Part shown: in pieces, positions 1 through 61,856 of the stretch
Layout: each line of letters starts with the position of its first letter
How positions within the stretch are numbered: the first letter of the stretch is position 1
Origin: Vitrella brassicaformis CCMP3155
Taxonomy: Eukaryota > Protista > Chromerida
Assembly: GCA_001179505.1 (NCBI GenBank)
Contig: CDMY01000292.1
Coordinates: 1 to 64,000 of the forward strand
Length of the DNA: 64,000 nt
Direction of reading: 5' to 3'
Program-made: the position numbers and the translations under genes
Notes under the pieces: generated by a model
Database searches by the model: none
Told to the model about the DNA's origin: nothing
Seen by the model: the letters and a program-made list of their open reading frames with translations, nothing else

Positions 1-149
1 AAACCCTAAACCCTAAACCCTAAACCCTAAACCCTAAACCCTAAACCCTAAACCCTACACCCTAAACCCTAAACCCTAAACCCTAAACCCTAAACCCTAA
101 ACCCTAGACCCTAATCCCTAAACCCTGAACCCTAAACCCTAAACCCTAA
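1..149 (-). repeat. Telomeric repeat array (CCCTAAA)n, i.e. TTTAGGG on the minus strand; chromosome left end
   Basis: About 21 tandem aaaccct units at the very start of the window. A few variant units (acaccct, agaccct, aatccct, gaaccct) occur, mostly toward the inner boundary. Confidence 0.98.
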
Positions 150-240
150 GGTGGTACGTTGAGGGACAGACGTGTGTGTGTGTGTGTCCTGGGAGGGGTG
201 TGACTGTGTTGGATTGAGTCAAGTGGCTGATCGCATTCAT
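150..240 (+). pseudogene. Telomere-truncated remnant (last 3 codons, stop and 3' flank) of the intronless gene family found at 32108, 45340, 52160 and 60801
   Basis: g-gtg-gta-cgt-TGA-gggacagacgtgtgtg matches g-gtg-gtg-ggg-TGA-gggacagatgtgtg (32108 copy) and g-gtg-ctg-gga-TGA-gggacagatgtgtg (60801 copy). The next segment gactgtgttggattgagtcaagtggctgatcgc matches gactgtttgattgagtgaagtggctcatcgc downstream of the 45340 copy. Confidence 0.75.
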
Positions 241-626
241 TTACGAAGTGAAATAGATGCCAGCACTTGTTTCATCTCATCTTTATACGCCACACGATTG
301 CAAAAGCATGAGCACGGCTGTGTGCGATGTCCTGACTGTGAATGTGTTGTGCTTCCTGGGTGTGTGTGTTGAGTGGCGTGTCCCGAGTGTGTGTATCCAT
401 CCACGTGACTGACTGCGAAGATCCGTTCAAATGATACGTGTGATGTGACATTCATTTGAAGGCATCCAAATATGAACCGATCCGCCTTACACACCCCTCC
501 ACTTAGACACACACACCTACTCCCACCACACCCCCACACTGTACCCCCACACACACACTCTAGCCCGACCGAACTGCCAGTTAGTCAGACCTCTGCTTAC
601 TCATCCGACCCATCACTGAGTGTCGT

Positions 627-2808
627 TCATGGCTCCTCCCTCTCCCTCTCCCTCTCCCTCCCCCTCTCTCTGTCTCTGTCTTTGTCTCTGTCCATCCGGT
701 TGATCATCTCATATCGGTCATACGGCCCCGGACGCCTGCTGCCCTCACTGGTGTGGGGGTCGTCTCGCCGCCGCATGGGGCCGTACCCTGGCGGCGACTC
801 GGGGCTGTCCTTGTCTCTGTCTTTAGGGAGGGGGTGCGGGGTGAGGGGCTCCTTGTCGTTGACAGTCGAGGGGCGATGTGGGCGTGGAGGCGACTCGTGC
901 TGCTGCTGGGCAGACTCACCAGGCCTGAAACCGTACACACACAGAGGACACACAGACAGAGAGACGGAGAGAGAGGGCTGGGTGGGTGGGTGGGGGAGAG
1001 TGGAAGGTCGTGTGTGTGTGTGTTTACATTGTGTGCTGCAGCAGGTGAGGGAGTGCCTCGTATAGGTCGTCTGGCGGCGATATGATGGGCCGCACGCGAC
1101 GCATCTGACGTCGAAGTACCTGCACAACAGAACCCGGGATTCTTCCCTCTCCCTCTCCCTCTCTCTCTCTCTGTGGAAGGCAGTTGAGCACCTCACCTCT
1201 CGCTGTTCGACTGGCAGCCAGTAGAGTGGGTATGGACACGGCTTGGTCTTCTTGAACAAACGAGACATTCGATCTGATAGACAGTGAGTGACACACGTAC
1301 AAACACACACATACACAGAAATATGGATGGATGGATGGGTGGGCGGAGGCCTGCAGGCCTGCCTCACTGACCGAGAGCTTCCACCGTCTTGTTTGCTTGC
1401 GGCACCGCACCCCCATTGCCTAAACGAACCGAACCAACACACATCCATACACACACGCACACACGCAATGAGTGAATGACACACAGACAGACAGACAGAC
1501 CCACCCGCTTTAGAGAAGGGCACCGGCATGCCGTCCGGAGTGCGGCCGGGGGGCAGAGGAGAGCTGCCATCCATCCATACATAAATACATACACACACAC
1601 ACACACAGAGAGAGAGAGATATAGAGAGAGAGAATGTTGTTGCACCCGACCATGCACCCGTTCATCCGTGCGCACATATGCTTTTGCCCTGCTGGGTGTG
1701 AGGCCGAGAAGGGCAAAGGGCTCCTGGACGGATGAGCACCTACACCTAGACACACACACACACATGCATGCATGCGCCCATGAGAGTGCGGGTGTGTGTG
1801 CCTCCCTGCCTACCTGGTATGGTTGGCTGTGCGTCGGGAGAGGCGACGTTAAGTGTGCGGGGCGGCAGCGCCTTGCGCTTACCGGCCTCGGCATCGTCCA
1901 TCTGCACATACACACACACATATGCACCCACCAGACAGACGCACAGACGTCAGACACCATTGCGCTGAATGACTGGCTGACCGCCCTCACCTCTCTCTGT
2001 GTGGCGAAGTGTGGCTCCAGCACACAGCTAGAGGTCTTGGGCCACACCACATCTGTGTGGAGACAGACATGTCCCTCCTTGCGTGTGTGTGTGTGTGTGT
2101 GTGTGTACCTGTGAGGGCGTCTTTGGTCCTGATGGCGTCGTCTTCGGTCTCAAACTGACACACATGACACACAGACAGACACCCGTGTGTGTGTCGTTGA
2201 GGTGTGTGCGTCTTGGCCTCACCTCAACGAGGCAGTGTGTCTTGATGGAATCCATCCAGAACCGCCGGATGGTGCCCGTCTCCTCAAGGAGCGAACGAAC
2301 AGACTGCGCACACAGATCATCACACACACCAGCAAGGATGTCCGCCTTGCCATGTGTGTGTGTGTGCGTTGACACCGACCTTCTCAGTGAAAGGCCGCAC
2401 GAAGCCATAGATGACCAGACAGGGCGAAGGGACCCCCCTGGCCACCTCCACCTCCCTCTCCCCGTCAGCACCACCCCCGTCATCAGCCCCGTTGGCACCA
2501 CCAGCTGGTGTGGCCTCTCCTTCCTCCCTGCCGTTGACATCGCCGTCAATGGCATGTCCTTTCATCGCAACGTCCTCGGGCAGAAGTGCCCCGTCCTGCT
2601 GCTGCTGCTGCTGCTCGCCAGCTGCTTCTACTGCTGCTCGTGTTGGCTCTTGTCCGCCCTGCTCGTCCTGCTCTTGTTGGTGGCCGTTGTGGTTGTCGAG
2701 AGGCTCCTCGTGGTCGTGTTGGACGTGTGCATCATCATCTGCTTGCATCTGATGCATGTGCTGGTTGGCGTTGTCCTGGCCTGCCTCTCCTTCTTGGTGG
2801 TGGTCCAT
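627..2808 (-). CDS. ACIN1: Acinus-like (apoptotic chromatin condensation inducer / ASAP complex) RRM protein, multi-exon
   Basis: Spliced pieces give an Acinus-type RRM (CLVIYGFVRPFTEK / SVRSLLEETGTIRRFWMDSIKTHCLVE / FETEDDAIRTKDALTG / VVWPKTSSCVLEPHFA), the RSB-like motif LFKKTKPCPYPLYWLP (about 1205-1260) and an RD/RE-rich tail. The start (2808 or 2916) and the last exon are tentative. Confidence 0.85.
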
Positions 2809-3034
2809 GCTGTGTTCTGCTACTGCTCCTGCCGCCCTCAGACGCCTCCGTTGCTCGCCCGCAGCAGCGGTTTCAGGGAGCTCGCCCAACGTGCGAGCTT
2901 TGAGAAAGATCTGCACTCAGGCAGCTTGTTGGGTTTGTTCGTTCGTTCGTCTCTCCCTCCGTCCCCTCACACCCTCTCCCATCCCCATCTTCCTCTGATC
3001 TGCAGCACCCCACCCCTCCCTGTAGCCAGCCATC

Positions 3035-4037
3035 ATGACGCCCCTCCCCCCCTCCCTTGTGCTGTTGCTCGGCGTTACGGCATCGTATGCCTACGTCCCC
3101 GGTGAGTGGCGAGTGTGGGGCGAGCCATGGCAACGAAGAAAGGCAAAGATCTGCATCTGCCTGTGTCTGGGAGGGAGAGAGAGACACGCGCCATGCAGGG
3201 TTGCTGTGTGTGTGTGGGTGTGGCATTCCTTGTCAGGTCCGTCGTCGTTTCTACGTAGCGGCAGGGTCGGCCCAGGCCGGTTTGAGGGCACCAAGCTGCA
3301 CCAGCAGCCACCAACGGCAGCCACTCAGACACACGCCACCACCCGAATGAGTACGCCATCCACAACGAGAGAGAACTCACAGAGGGAGAGGGAGAGGGAG
3401 AGGGAGGCAGAGCGACATCTGCACAAAACCAAAACACAACACACAGCACAACACACAGCTCTCCCATTCTTTCTCTCTGTGTGTGTGCGTGTGCAGCTCC
3501 TGAGGCCAAGTACCGAGTAGCTGTGATCGGTGGCGGCCCGGCCGGCGCTAGTGCCGCCGAGATCTTTGCCGAGAACGGCGACATGGTGGAGACCTTCATG
3601 GTCGAGAGGAAAATGGACAACTGCAAGGTGGGTGAGTCCCTCTACCAGTGAGTGCCACTTACTGGTGGGGCGGTGGGCCGAAGCATCGTGGACATCTGTG
3701 TGTGTGCTGTGTGATGTCAGCCGTGCGGCGGTGCCATCCCTCTCTGCATGGTGGAGGAGTTCAACCTCCCTGAGAGTGAGATGGGCACACTTACCGCCCA
3801 CAGACACACACACTCCCTCTCTGTCTGTCTCTGTCTGTCGCTCTCTCTCTGGTGACAGACATAGTGGACCGTAAGGTTCGCAAGATGAAGATGATCTCCC
3901 CGTCCAACAGAGAGGTGGACGTCGGCAAGACCCTCCTCCCGCACGAGTACATCGGCATGACGCGCCGAGAGGTCCTGGACAAATTCATGAGGGACAGAGC
4001 CGTCGAAAAGGTCAGCACGTGGGCCACACACACCCAC

Positions 4038-4070
<33 letters not shown>

Positions 4071-5545
4071 GGGAGAGTATGGCCCTCTGCGTGTGTGGGT
4101 CTCATCCACACGTGTGTGTATGTGTGTGTGTGTGGTCAGGGTGCGGTTGCTATCAACGGTTTGGTGACCAAGGTTGATTTGCCCGAGAGCAGCGACAGCG
4201 GCCGGTACGTCATCCACCTCAAGAACTTTGACAAGGGCGACAAGGGCACCGGAGTCAGCGAAACACTCGAGGTCAGTCAGTGAACCCGACAACCCCCACC
4301 TCCCCCCAACACACACACACACACACACACACACAGAAGGAGAGAGAGAGAGAGAGAGAGAGCAGTGACACACACACACACAGACACAGAAACACCATTC
4401 TTGTCCCTCGTTCTGTGTGGCCACAGGTGGATATGATCATCGGTGCCGACGGTGCCAACAGCCGTGTGGCCAAGTCCATCGGTGCGGGCGAGTACAACTA
4501 CGCCATCGCTTTCCAGGAGAGAATCAAGATTCCCGACGAGCAGATGAAATACTACGAGGTCAGCCACAGAGAGAGAGAGCGAGAGGGAGAGAGAGAGAAC
4601 ACTTGATGCGTGGATGTGTGCCTGTGTGTGTGTGTGTGTAGGAGCTGGCGGAGATGTATGTGGGCGACGATGTGTCACCGGACTTTTACGCGTGGGTCTT
4701 CCCCAAGTAATAAGCACCACACACACATACACATCCATCCATCCATCCGTGTGTCTGAGCGTAGGTATGACCACGTTGGTGTGGGCACCGGCACCGTCAT
4801 CAACCGGCCAGCCATCAAGGAATACCAAAAGGCCATCAGGTCAGTCAGCACCAGCCCCCCTCCCCCCCTCTCCCTCTCCCTCTCGACACCAATCTCCCCC
4901 TCTCTCTCTGTCCACTCCTCGTACTTACACAGGGACCGTGCGGCCGAGCGTCTGCGAGGCGGTGAGCTGTTGAAGGTGGAGGCTCACCCCATTCCCGAGC
5001 ACTACCGCCCCAAGCGTGTGGTGGGCCGTGTGGCGCTCGTGGGCGACGCGGCGGGCTACGTCACCAAGTGCAGTGGGGAGGGCATCTACTTTGCTGCAAA
5101 GAGCGGGCGGATGGCAGCCGAGGAGATCATGGGTGTGATGAAGGCCACTGGCAGGCTGCCCACCGAGCAGGAGATCAAGGACACCTATCTGAAGAAGTAC
5201 GACCGGGCGTACGGCCCCACTTACACAGTGCTTGACCTCCTCCAAAAGGTAAGTAACCATCACCACCACCGTGGTGGCACCCTCTCCCACACATACACAC
5301 ACACAGCCACACACACACCATCTCTGTGTGTGTGTGTCATTGCTTAAGGTGTTTTACACCAACAATGCGGCGCGCGAGGCGTTTGTGGAGCTGTGTGAGG
5401 ACGACTACGTGCAGAAGGTGACCTTCGACAGCTACCTGTACAAGAAGGTGCAGGGCAACGACCCCCTCAGCGATATCGGCTTGCTCTTCAAGACCATCGG
5501 ATCGCTCATCAGGTATGCTCACAGACACACACACACACACACACA

Positions 5546-32107: not shown

Positions 32108-33157
32108 TCACCCCACCACCGTCCCTCTGTTGATAACGTCATTCTCGAGGCTGAAGTTCCGCAGCACGGCACGCCAGCAGGGCATCGATGTGGGGAAGCG
32201 GACGTCGAACGATTGAGGCCGATCGCCAACAGACCGCTCGGTCGTCCACAGAGTGATGTCGTTGGCGTCGCCGGCTGTCACCTGCAGATAGGCAGCGACG
32301 GTCTCGTTGGGCTGGAAGCCGCTCACAATAACAAAACGATGGTCGTCAGGGTTGGCATGATTCAGGTTGCCCGCGTCGTCGTCCCGGGAGTCCACAGCGA
32401 CGCCCTGCTGCTCGGTGATGGCCTCAGTCAGCAGACGGCGATAGCGGGGATCATTGTGGTTGATGGGAGCCTGCAGCACCAGCCTCTCGCCCACCCCCTC
32501 CTCCTGGCACCACGACACGAGCAGCGTGTCTAGGAGAAACGATGAGGAGGAGGGGTAGAGACAGTTTCCCTGTCGGATGACGGGATCGGTCGTCTGGTAG
32601 CCGGTAGCGTAGTCATTGCCGTGAGGCAGGTCACTCAGCTGCACCACACCGAACGACACGTTGCCGATCCGATAAGCACCGTTGCCGGCTTGCTGCAGCG
32701 CCAGGCTCTGTCCCTGGGAGGTGAGCATGTGGCCGAATAGGCGGTAGATGGCCATGGCTAAGGGCAGCTGATGGAAGGCCGTCTTGTTGGGGAGGTTGGC
32801 CATCAGCCACTGAGCCGACAGCACCAGCGGCAGCCCAGTGGCCGGCGTCATTCGATAGATGGCGGCGAGGCGGATGAAGACCACACCGACCCGACGCCAC
32901 TCCTGGCTGCTGCCCTGCTCCAGCACATAGGCCACTCGCAGCACATACGTCAATGAGAGGGGGGCCGTGCGGTCGATGTCGATGAGGCCGGTAAGTATGA
33001 GGCGGGCGAGGGACGCGTCGATGCGCTCCACCAGCACACCAGCCGTCACCAGAGCCGACTTCGCCCGGCAGGTGGCTCGCACACAGACGAGCTCATGGAC
33101 GAGGAGGGAGGGGAGAATGCGCCTGCGCCACACCTCATCGGGCGCCGAATCAGACAT
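32108..33157 (-). CDS. Intronless lineage-specific family protein, subtype A (F-box-like N-terminus plus shared unknown domain), about 349 aa
   Basis: Single open ORF. N-terminus MSDSAPDEVWRRRILPSLLVHELVCVRATCR is near-identical to the 52160 copy, and the C-terminal domain is shared with the 45340 and 60801 copies. Confidence 0.85.
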   Translation of the reverse strand: MSDSAPDEVWRRRILPSLLVHELVCVRATCRAKSALVTAGVLVERIDASLARLILTGLIDIDRTAPLSLTYVLRVAYVLEQGSSQEWRRVGVVFIRLAAIYRMTPATGLPLVLSAQWLMANLPNKTAFHQLPLAMAIYRLFGHMLTSQGQSLALQQAGNGAYRIGNVSFGVVQLSDLPHGNDYATGYQTTDPVIRQGNCLYPSSSSFLLDTLLVSWCQEEGVGERLVLQAPINHNDPRYRRLLTEAITEQQGVAVDSRDDDAGNLNHANPDDHRFVIVSGFQPNETVAAYLQVTAGDANDITLWTTERSVGDRPQSFDVRFPTSMPCWRAVLRNFSLENDVINRGTVVG

Positions 33158-33336
33158 CGCCACTCATCAATCAGCACATGGCACCGCCTCTCACTGACTC
33201 GAGGAAGATCTGCGAGCTAAGACACGATGCAAGGATCGCTGCCGGCGGCCTTTCCATTTCCCGTGGCCCGTGCAACATCTTGGAAGGCCGTGGTTCATCT
33301 TCATTAGAGATATCGTGAAGTGATCCATTTGAAACC

Positions 33337-45339: not shown

Positions 45340-46427
45340 TCACACCACCGTCCCTCTGTTGATGACGCCATCGGCTAGCTCGAAGTGGCTCAGCACGGCA
45401 CGCCAGCGGGGCATCGATGTGGGGAAGCGGACGGCCAGCGGCTGAGACCGATCGCCAGCAGACCGCTCGGTCGTCCACAGAGTGATGTCGCCTATCACCG
45501 ACAGAAGGGCAGCGACGTCCTCGTTGGGCCGGAAGCCGCTCACGACCACATAACGAAAGTGAAAAGGGTTGGCATAATTCAGGTTGCCGCCGTCATTCCG
45601 GTAGTCCACAGCGATGGCCCCCTGCTGCTGCTCGCTCATGGCCTCGGTCAGCAGACGGCGGTAGCGGGTGTCATTCCTGCCGATGTGTGCCTGCAGCACC
45701 CTCCTGTTGCCGACCCATGCCTCATGGCACCACAGCATGAAGAGCCTGCCCAGCAGGAACGATGAGAAGGAGGCGAGGAGCCAGTTGCCCCATCGGATGG
45801 CGGGATCGGTCGTATTGTAGGCGCTGCGATAGGGATGGTTGGCCGGCAGCTCACTCAACGGCACCACACGGAACGACTCATCGCCGATCCGATGGACATC
45901 GTTGTCAGCTGGCTGCAGCGCCAGACTGGTGCCCTGGTGGGTGAGGCGGTGGCCGAATAGCCGGTAGATGGCCATGGCTAAGGGCAGCTGGAGGAAGGCT
46001 GTTGGGGAGGGCAGCGCATCAGCCGACAGCCGCAGGGGCAGAGTTGCATTGGGAGTGAGCCGATAGATGGCGGCCAGCCGAATGAACCGCCCCATCGCCC
46101 GCCACTCGCCGCCACTGCCCTCCTCCAGCAGATGCACCACCTTCCAGCCGTCCTCCAGACCACCGACGTCGAAGACCAGGGCGTCCTCGAGCCCCAGACG
46201 ACCGACGGCCTCCTCTATGCGCTGCTCGACGAGTGTGAGGGCGGTGCTGGCCTCGGCCTGCGGCAATCTGTCGATGCACTGACGGAGCGTGGCGCGTCTG
46301 TCGGGTGGGGTGACATGGCCATGTCTGCCGCCCTGGTGATGGCAAGGTCGGGCAGAGAGGGGACCGCCGGAGGGGCGGCGGGGGGCGGGGGAGTGGTGGG
46401 GGGCAGCTGATGCGACGACGACGCCAT
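45340..46427 (-). pseudogene. Intronless lineage-specific family protein, subtype B; apparent 1-nt frameshift near 46290
   Basis: ATG at 46427 gives MASSSHQLPPTTPPPPAAPPAVPSLPDLAITRAA, as in the 60801 copy, but this is out of frame with the 308-aa ORF 46266-45340. Adding one base (gac gcg [g]cc acg ctc cgt cag tgc) restores it. Could be a sequencing error. Confidence 0.7.
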
Positions 46428-51975: not shown

Positions 51976-52159
51976 CGGTGTGTTTGTATGGCCATTCGTT
52001 TCTGACGCCTGTCTGTCTGCTGGTGCCGGGCGTCTGATATCATTTGAGGTGAGCAGAGCAGCCGCCCTTCCCATGGCGGTCGCCCTCTCCATCGGCGACA
52101 CTGTCCGTTGTGCTCTGTGGCAGGCGGTGGCCATGTGCTGATTGGAGTGGGTAGTGGAG

Positions 52160-53224
52160 ATGTCCGATGCGGTGCCCGATGAGGTATGGCGCAGGCGCAT
52201 TCTCCCCTCCCTCCTCGTCCATGAGCTCGTCTGTGTGCGAGCCACTTGCCGGGCGAAGTCGGCTCTGGTGACGGCTGGTTTGCTGGTGGAGCGCATCGAC
52301 GCGTCCCTCGCCCGCCTCACACTCACCGGCCTCATCGACATCGACCGCACGGCCCCCCTCTCATTGACCTATGTGCTGCGGGTGGCCTATGTGCTGGAGC
52401 AGGGCAGCAGCCAGGAGTGGCGTCGGGTCGGTGTGGTCTTCATCCGCCTCGCCGCCATCTATCGGCTGACACCGGCCAGTGGACTGCCGCTGGTGCTGCC
52501 GGCTCAGTGGCTGATGGCCAACCTCCTCAGCAAGACGACCTTCCATCAGCTGCCCTTAGCCATGGCCATTTACCGCCTATTCGGCCACATACTCACCTCC
52601 CAGGGACAGAGCCTGGCGCTGCAGCAAGCCGGCAACGGTGCCTATCGGATCGGCAATGTGTCGTTCGGTGTGGTGCAGCTGAGTGACCTGCCTCACGGCA
52701 ATGACTATGCTACCGGCTATCAGCGGACCGATCCCGTCATCCGATGGGACAACCTGCTCTACCCCTCCTTCTCATCGTTCCTCCTGCGCACGGTGCTCGT
52801 GTGGTGGCGCCATGGGGTAGGGGTGGGCCGCAGGCACGTCTTGACTGGACGCATCATCGACAATGACCCCCGCTACCGCCGTCTGCTGACCGAGGCCATG
52901 AGCGAGCAGCAGCATGGGGGCATCGCTGTGGACTACCGCTGGGACGGACGCAACCTGAATCATGCCAACCCAACCTACTTTCGATGTGTGAGTGTGAGCG
53001 GCTTCCGGCCTGGTGAGAGAGTCGCTGCGTATGTGGAGGTAGGTGTGGGCGACATCCGTCTGTTGACGACCGAGCGGCCTGTTGGCGATCGGTCTCAGCC
53101 GCTCGTTGATCGCTACCCCATATCGATGCCCCGCTGGCGTGCCGTGCTGAGGCACTTCGGCGTTGAGGACGATGTCATCAACAGAGGGAGGGTGCTGGGA
53201 GGGGGTGATGGGGTGAGGGGGTGA
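52160..53224 (+). CDS. Intronless lineage-specific family protein, subtype A (F-box-like N-terminus), about 354 aa
   Basis: Single ORF, paralogue of 32108-33157. The first ~190 aa are almost identical and the C-terminal half is more divergent. Confidence 0.85.
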   Translation: MSDAVPDEVWRRRILPSLLVHELVCVRATCRAKSALVTAGLLVERIDASLARLTLTGLIDIDRTAPLSLTYVLRVAYVLEQGSSQEWRRVGVVFIRLAAIYRLTPASGLPLVLPAQWLMANLLSKTTFHQLPLAMAIYRLFGHILTSQGQSLALQQAGNGAYRIGNVSFGVVQLSDLPHGNDYATGYQRTDPVIRWDNLLYPSFSSFLLRTVLVWWRHGVGVGRRHVLTGRIIDNDPRYRRLLTEAMSEQQHGGIAVDYRWDGRNLNHANPTYFRCVSVSGFRPGERVAAYVEVGVGDIRLLTTERPVGDRSQPLVDRYPISMPRWRAVLRHFGVEDDVINRGRVLGGGDGVRG

Positions 53225-60470: not shown

Positions 60471-60803
60471 CGATTTTGAAGGCGCTGCTCATCGAAGGTG
60501 AGAGGGCAGCGAGAGGCGCAAAGGACGACCGACAATGCTTCACACAGCTGCTGGTGGTTTGTCTGAGCAGATCTCAAGTCTCTGCGTCGCTCCTCGCTCA
60601 AGTTTGTGGTGTGCTGTGTGTCTGCAGAGTCACTCATTCACCAGGGCTCACTCCCCCCGCCTCTCTGCTGTGACGGTGTCTGTCTGAGGTGAGCAGAGCA
60701 TCCCGCCCTCCCATGGATCTCGTCTGACTGACTGATTGCCATTCACTCGTTCGTGTGTCCTTCCTCTTTTGATTCATTCAGATCTCTCACTCACTCACCG
60801 ATG
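60471..60803 (+). repeat. Upstream cassette R3, copy 2
   Basis: Matches the reverse complement of 46425-46729. Confidence 0.9.
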
Positions 60804-61856
60804 GCGTCGTCGTCGCATCAGATGCCCCCCACCACTCCCCAGCCCGCCCCTCCGGCAGTCTTCTCTCTGCCCGACCTTGCCATCACCAGGGCGGCAGAAC
60901 TCCGTCGGTGCATCGTCAGATTGCCGCAGGCCGAGGCCAGCACCGCGCTCACACTCGTCGAGCAGCGCATAGAGGAGGCCATCGGTCGTCTGGGGCTCGA
61001 GGACGTCCTGGTCTTCGACGTCGGTGGTCTGGAGGACGGCTGGAAGGTGGTGCATCTGCTGGAGGAGGGCAGTGGCGGAGAGTGGCGGGCGATGGGGCGG
61101 TTCATTCGGCTGGCCGCCATCTATCGGCTCACACCCAATGCAACTCTGCCCCTGCGGCTGTCGGCTGATGCGCTGCCCTCCCCAACAGCCCTCCGACAGC
61201 TGCCCCTCATCATGGCCCTCTACAAGACCATCGGCCATCGCCTCACCCACCAGGGGACCAGCCTGGCGCTGCAGCAAGACAACAATGATGGGGCGTATCG
61301 GATCGGCGATGCGTCGTTCCGTGTGGTGCCGTTGAGTGACCTGACGGCCAACCATCCCTATCGCAGCGGCTACCAGACCACCGATCCCGTCATCCGCCGA
61401 GACGACTACCTCTACCGCTCCTTCTCGTCATTCCTCCTGCGCACGGTGCTCGAGCGGTGGTGCCATGATGAGGGGATGGGCCGCAGGTGGGTGCTGCACG
61501 CTCACATCGGCAGGAATGACCCCCGCTATCGCCGTCTGCTGGCCGAGGCCATCAGCGAGAAGCAGCAGGGGGCCATCGCTGCGGACTTTCGCGTAGACGT
61601 CGGCAACCTGAATCATACCAATCCTGACGACAGTCGTCGTGTGATCGTGAGCGGCTTCCGGCCCAACGAGGACGTCGCTGCCTATCTGAGTGTGAGTGAT
61701 GGCTACATCTTTCTGTACAGGACCGAGCGGTCTGTTGGCGATCGGTCTCAGCCGCTGGCCGTCCGGTTCCCTACATCGATGCCCCGCTGGCGTCCCGTGC
61801 TGAGTCACTTCGAGCTGGTGGATGACGTCATCAACAGAGGGACGGTGCTGGGATGA
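60801..61856 (+). CDS. Intronless lineage-specific family protein, subtype B, about 351 aa
   Basis: Single ORF from ATG 60801 (MASSSHQMPPTT...). Paralogue of 45340-46427, with a 12-codon shorter N-terminal segment. Confidence 0.85.
   Translation: MASSSHQMPPTTPQPAPPAVFSLPDLAITRAAELRRCIVRLPQAEASTALTLVEQRIEEAIGRLGLEDVLVFDVGGLEDGWKVVHLLEEGSGGEWRAMGRFIRLAAIYRLTPNATLPLRLSADALPSPTALRQLPLIMALYKTIGHRLTHQGTSLALQQDNNDGAYRIGDASFRVVPLSDLTANHPYRSGYQTTDPVIRRDDYLYRSFSSFLLRTVLERWCHDEGMGRRWVLHAHIGRNDPRYRRLLAEAISEKQQGAIAADFRVDVGNLNHTNPDDSRRVIVSGFRPNEDVAAYLSVSDGYIFLYRTERSVGDRSQPLAVRFPTSMPRWRPVLSHFELVDDVINRGTVLG

Follow-up and report, generated by a model that had tools for sequence, protein, structure and literature searches.

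Telomere repeats joined to the 3' end of a truncated orphan-family gene at a chromosome end of Vitrella brassicaformis CCMP3155

The chromosome end described here lies at the start of contig CDMY01000292.1 (C292, 131,573 bp) of Vitrella brassicaformis CCMP3155, a chromerid and sister to Apicomplexa. The assembly (72.70 Mb in 1064 pieces) was built from short reads and scaffolded. The first 64 kb of C292, hereafter the window, were analyzed and found to carry the following features:

1-149, + strand: telomere array, C-rich strand (TRF, and the repeat at other contig ends)
150-162, + strand: family-A coding remnant of 10 nt (150-159) and TGA stop (160-162) (profile alignment)
163-272, + strand: family-A 3' flank of one subfamily, of the GGGACAGA-(GT)n ... 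CTGACTGTG ... AGTGGCT type (profile, E=5e-15; blastn)
308-720, + strand: extended downstream cassette, common to two family loci (sequence comparison)
3514-5513, + strand: ChlP (geranylgeranyl reductase) gene, multi-exon (TIGR02028 exon pieces, E 6e-46, 4e-21 and 1e-20)
32108-33163, - strand: full family-A copy, ORF of 351 aa (family search)
45340-46266, - strand: family-A copy (family search)
52142-53224, + strand: family-A copy, its protein 81% identical to that of the 32108 copy (family search)
60753-61856, + strand: family-A copy (family search)

The telomere array starts at the first base of the contig and consists of (CCCTAAA)n, described by TRF as 21.3 copies of AAACCCT (period 7, 94% matches). 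It includes four variant units, all but one of which lie in the proximal third. The polarity of the repeat is that expected of a left chromosome end, and the identical repeat was found with correct polarity at other contig ends too. Exact-repeat scans located telomere tracts on 25 contigs, which is an incomplete list; twelve of the other ends were compared with C292 in sequence, and the C894, C697 and C802 ends were entered by coordinates only.

Moving inward from the telomere, the first intact gene that can be recognised is ChlP, approximately 3.4 kb from the end and with at least six exons. It is the only copy in the genome, all seven genome matches falling within C292:3514-5513. A possible signal-peptide exon was noted near 3035. 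The single-copy gene is presumably essential, and its location at 3514-5513 indicates that this chromosome end has essentially no dispensable buffer.

The four family-A copies of the window are single-exon genes, and in the genome at least 134 matches to the family were found out of 353 candidates. Stop codons were placed for 30 copies. One subfamily ends in ...GGTGGTGGGG TGA GGGACAGATGTGTG..., continuing through ...CTGACTGTG... to ...AGTGGCT, and the 32108(-) and 61856(+) copies end in ...GGTGGTGGGG TGA GGGACAGATGTG..., the counterpart of C292 from base 150 onward. No Pfam domain was detected in 18 members, even at E<=1, a profile search gave no sequence match in the PDB, and Foldseek with an AlphaFold2 model (pLDDT 69, pTM 0.60) gave no match to the PDB. 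An F-box identity was rejected, the ESM Atlas leads being sub-threshold (0.79-0.85) and Pfam blank in the 18 members. A telomere-targeted retrotransposon of the HeT-A/TART, SART/TRAS or Zepp type was also rejected: no reverse transcriptase, endonuclease or Gag was found (Pfam blank, 18 members), no PDB sequence or fold match was obtained, and the shared flank does not end in poly(A). A word-based search returned 86 family-A proteins. Every named relative from this search and from a profile search of 1.84 billion representatives belonged to V. brassicaformis CCMP3155; the others were short JGI metagenome contigs and MMETSP transcripts, the latter indicating that some members are transcribed. 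On the basis of these sequence searches, family A is classed as an orphan family confined to Vitrella.

The C292 sequence from base 150 is G GTG GTA CGT TGA, its stop codon at 160-162; GGGACAGA comes next, and then a (GT)n run and a G-rich block. The first-pass annotation had taken this for the terminal codons, stop and 3' flank of the family, beginning right after the telomere. An nhmmer profile of seven family 3' ends, all from other contigs and spanning -60 to +130 around the stop, was searched against the 64-kb window and 72 kb beside the twelve other telomeres. It confirmed the assignment, matching window 149-272(+) with E=5.1e-15 (51 bits, model positions 50-175). Its first aligned model position, 50, lies 10-11 nt ahead of the stop and falls exactly at the telomere junction. 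The four full copies of the window scored E 1e-35 to 7e-22 with the same profile, and the best background match reached E 0.002 (13 bits). Since 149-272 aligned to the family far better than GT-rich intergenic DNA did (E=5e-15 vs 0.002), the observation of a family 3' end at the telomere holds.

In blastn searches the fragment matched eight family loci, each exactly at the 3' end of that copy. The resemblance noted earlier between the next ~60 bp and the flank of the 45340 copy was recovered (181-240, 78% over 60 nt), and better matches were given by the flanks of the 32108 copy (150-258, 77% over 113 nt, E 4e-18) and of a C782 copy (80% over 81 nt). The homology reaches approximately base 720, farther than had been seen before: the copy at C1028:115376-116221 is followed by a 3' flank that lines up colinearly with window 160-257 and 378-720 (78%, E 2e-78). 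Beside the copies on C387 and C1028(-), segment 308-720 occurs inverted with respect to them, indicating that it behaves as a separate cassette. This non-coding cassette of about 400 nt was observed downstream of family copies in either orientation (window 308-720; C387:53010-53381; C1028:116475-116775 and 112588-112750).

No second near-identical copy of window 150-420, a candidate for the un-truncated locus, was found genome-wide in the assembly. All non-self genome matches of 150-420 adjoin family copies, and those in the 163-272 stretch come only from the C77 and C782 flanks. An ORF beside the junction gave no match when looked up in independent assemblies. By both the profile and the blastn comparisons, the stretch 150-720 is identified as the remnant of one more family-A copy with its downstream flank, and this remnant is a non-functional scar. 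Only 10 coding nucleotides, the stop and about 560 nt of flank are left, with nothing between them and the telomere, indicating that the rest of the copy was lost at the chromosome end.

The junction at 149/150 contains no N and the sequence is contiguous. No k-mer is common to the telomere repeat and the family sequence at this point, leaving nothing to mislead a graph assembler, and the microhomology with the repeat is 0 nt. Read 5'->3' toward the telomere, the strand to be extended is rich in C: it ends in ...ACGTACCACC (last bases ...ACCACC), after which TTAGGG follows. The orientation of the (TG)n tract puts (CA)n on the extendable strand, which is non-seeding for telomerase. No satellite separates the telomere from the gene fragment. 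This absence, to which the first-pass annotation had drawn attention, is real at C292 and not peculiar to it: none of the twelve other ends has a satellite, and in each the change from telomere to complex DNA is abrupt.

No motif was shared among junctions, no k-mer of 9 or more occurring in more than 2 of 13 junction regions. The innermost repeat phase ...ACCCT, present at 5/13 junctions, was not significant allowing for seven phases. Near 7/13 junctions there was a (TG)n tract, where the background rate is 28% (P=0.04); most of these tracts had the non-seeding orientation. The idea of a Cbs-like breakage motif at a fixed distance was rejected, the 13 junctions having no common motif beyond the genome-wide (TG)n.

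The C292 end has no block in common with the twelve other ends, of which eight share blocks of 1-5 kb and four are also without them; no universal element was found. Blocks of 0.3-2.3 kb (77-86%) are common to C374, C539, C542, C571, C310 and C283, and the C130 and C424 ends share 4.8 kb at 79% from about 1 kb inside the telomere. The long ORF (448 aa) of this last block gave no Pfam match. The block at the C374, C539, C542 and C571 ends (1-2 kb, 77-80%; C539 386-3027) carries a two-exon gene, here called family B, with at least 151 matches genome-wide out of 420 candidates. In hhalign comparisons, exon 1 of family B corresponded to family A residues 12-118 (E 8e-4) and exon 2 to residues 132-199 (E 7e-5), so that the exon order is colinear with family A. 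The family A profile, searched against 1.84 billion representatives, reached at library-wide E 1e-6 to 5e-4 proteins whose identity to the family B exons is 40-80%, and BLASTP with family B exon 2 matched family A proteins at about 1e-4. These ties indicate that family B is a distant branch of the orphan superfamily of family A.

Two further observations were made at these ends. An interstitial telomere tract, degenerate and running the opposite way (TTTAGGG), sits at the inner edge of the shared block on C539 (~3030-3067); it looks like an inverted former end. At the C374 end, about 12 copies of a variant unit, CCCTGAG, occupy the first ~90-180 nt inside the canonical repeats, before unique DNA.

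Three of the 25 telomere tracts have a family A sequence no more than 3 kb away: the remnant on C292, a fragment on C374 and a copy on C894 (961-2103) less than 1 kb from the telomere. The C374 fragment is an isolated family A C-terminus (residues ~272-350, E 5e-17), located 2417-2687 from the telomere on the minus strand and flanked by parts of the subtelomeric blocks that the ends share. For family B, six of the 25 tracts have a member within 5 kb (C542, C571, C539, C374, C697 and C802). In crude Poisson tests, which ignore clustering and treat as independent a set of ends that share blocks and form an incomplete list, these counts compare with expectations of 0.2-0.5 for family A (P 0.001-0.013) and 0.8 for family B (P 2e-4); either family occurs within 5 kb of 8/25 ends against ~1.6 expected (P ~3e-4). 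We take the end enrichment of family B to be real and that of family A to be suggestive. The contigs that carry most copies, C240, C350 and C377 with their large clusters among them, show no telomere repeats, and C292 is the only end at which the telomere lies inside a family copy.

The most economical cause of the C292 end, requiring the fewest steps, is a terminal deletion followed by a new telomere, and we consider deletion of a family-A copy followed by telomere healing the best explanation, with a probability of roughly 0.65. One more family-A copy would once have read away from the chromosome end; a double-strand break or terminal erosion would have removed everything distal to its last 10 coding bases, and the broken end would then have been capped with TTTAGGG repeats. 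The earlier proposal of breakage or recombination in a family copy, followed by telomerase action, is upheld as far as the cut is concerned: the copy is cut off by the end, and breakage or erosion with subsequent telomere addition is the simplest cause. Our inference is that the sequence was lost by deletion and that the telomere was built by telomerase, not by recombination. The family is involved at this end because its members are over-represented near ends and not because it induces breaks.

As at healed ends, the telomere is fused into a truncated coding region, 10 nt upstream of the stop. Elements of other ends are absent, but four other ends are also without them. On the other hand, the absence of overlap, the (CA)n on the extendable strand and the variant repeats near the junction do not fit a textbook telomerase event. 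The junction lacks the complementarity expected for annealing to the telomerase template, as judged against the repeat and not the Vitrella template itself. The variant units lie 20-45 nt from the junction, as they do at other Vitrella ends, suggesting either that the event or telomere is not recent or that the contig end is noisy.

In P. falciparum 3D7, 5 of 28 ends lack TAREs, and their telomere repeats are fused into genes or directly adjoin them, in four cases within truncated var genes; at all nine healing junctions pairing with the telomerase RNA template was possible, and healing events were observed arising in culture (Calhoun et al. 2017, PMC5550746). The C292 end is like the var ends in that the repeats run directly into a truncated member of a multi-copy, end-enriched family, producing a pseudogene, and like the healed ends in that the repeat elements of other ends are absent; the repeat is of the TTTAGGG type in both species. 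In contrast, the Vitrella junction is without complementarity and is known from one assembly of one strain, and its family, unlike var, is an orphan and not a known surface antigen. Terminal deletion with healing is a known kind of event with an ordinary mechanism, here in a lineage for which we found no earlier description, a literature search for Vitrella telomeres having returned nothing specific.

The zero microhomology and the C-rich primer strand would also agree with a telomere acquired by recombination instead of telomerase, whether by break-induced replication, by taking over the telomere of a different end or by exchange at an interstitial tract. Vitrella subtelomeres do exchange blocks, and the inverted interstitial tract of C539 points the same way. 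Recombination requires shared sequence, however, and the family sequence at the junction is unlike the repeat; moreover, no donor block lies alongside the C292 telomere, and we consider this origin unlikely. The nature of the assembly, short-read, scaffolded and in 1064 pieces, raises the question of whether telomeric reads were misjoined to an internal family locus, since repeated families break assemblies and the C571 telomere tract was scaffolded internally beside Ns. Such an artefact is quite improbable given the gapless junction, the lack of k-mer overlap between repeat and locus, the uniqueness of 150-420 in the assembly, the equally abrupt junctions at the twelve other ends and a repeat polarity that is right for a left end.

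The proposal of the first-pass annotation that the family may mark or promote chromosome ends survives in its weaker form, as over-representation near telomeres; promotion did not, there being no junction motif and 0 nt of overlap. The stronger version, in which the family 3' end is an active signal or hotspot for breakage or telomere addition comparable to the chromosome breakage sequences of ciliates, would account for the proximity of A or B to 8/25 ends, where ~1.6 were expected. It is nevertheless very unlikely, because the telomere lies inside a copy at one end only, the 13 junctions have no common motif beyond genome-wide (TG)n, the tract at the C292 junction is in the non-seeding orientation and most copies (the C240, C350 and C377 clusters) are on contigs without telomere repeats. 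We give just as little credence to a fragment already 5'-truncated on arrival, by retroposition or segmental duplication, with the telomere lying at its edge by chance. The genes of the family have a single exon in a genome rich in introns, and gene fragments do occur in subtelomeres, as on C374, but there is no reverse transcriptase or endonuclease (Pfam blank), the shared flank does not end in poly(A), and a homology start coinciding exactly with the telomere junction would be unlikely.

Terminal deletion with healing, the preferred reading, identifies a concrete junction (window 149/150). Like yeast Y'/X, Plasmodium var/rif/stevor and trypanosome VSG, the Vitrella families are large, lineage-specific and over-represented near telomeres. 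As in those patchwork subtelomeres, Vitrella ends share blocks (77-80%) and hold gene fragments and an interstitial telomere tract; unlike them, they have no canonical ordered (TARE-like) subtelomere, and most A and B copies are on contigs without telomeres. Ciliate chromosome breakage sequences offer a likeness in the alveolate lineage and in the placing of a telomere on non-telomeric DNA without microhomology, whereas Vitrella has no conserved motif near its junctions, no sign of programmed fragmentation and a single junction of this kind.

Telomere healing in subtelomeric family genes is central to the loss and diversification of end-located genes in malaria parasites. The Vitrella scar, the end-enriched orphan families and the exchanged blocks suggest that this end biology is older than parasitism. 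Tentatively, families A and B could form a true subtelomeric, fast-turnover orphan superfamily in a free-living photosynthetic relative of Apicomplexa, in which chromosome ends break, are healed and exchange blocks as the var regions of Plasmodium do, a view we regard as possible but doubtful. If it were true, a multigene family at healing-repaired ends would predate parasitism, instead of having evolved to serve antigenic variation. As a by-product, the orphan superfamily enriched at ends and the exchange of subtelomeric blocks are of most interest.

Telomere tracts were also observed away from contig ends. A long tract lies inside scaffold C571 (265866-266082 of 331701) and adjoins a run of N, indicating a chromosome end that was probably wrongly scaffolded to other DNA; on this reading, the public Vitrella scaffolds contain at least one chromosome end joined internally. 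On C1017 a tract at 1926-2044 lies approximately 1.9 kb inside the contig start, in the CCCTAAA orientation.
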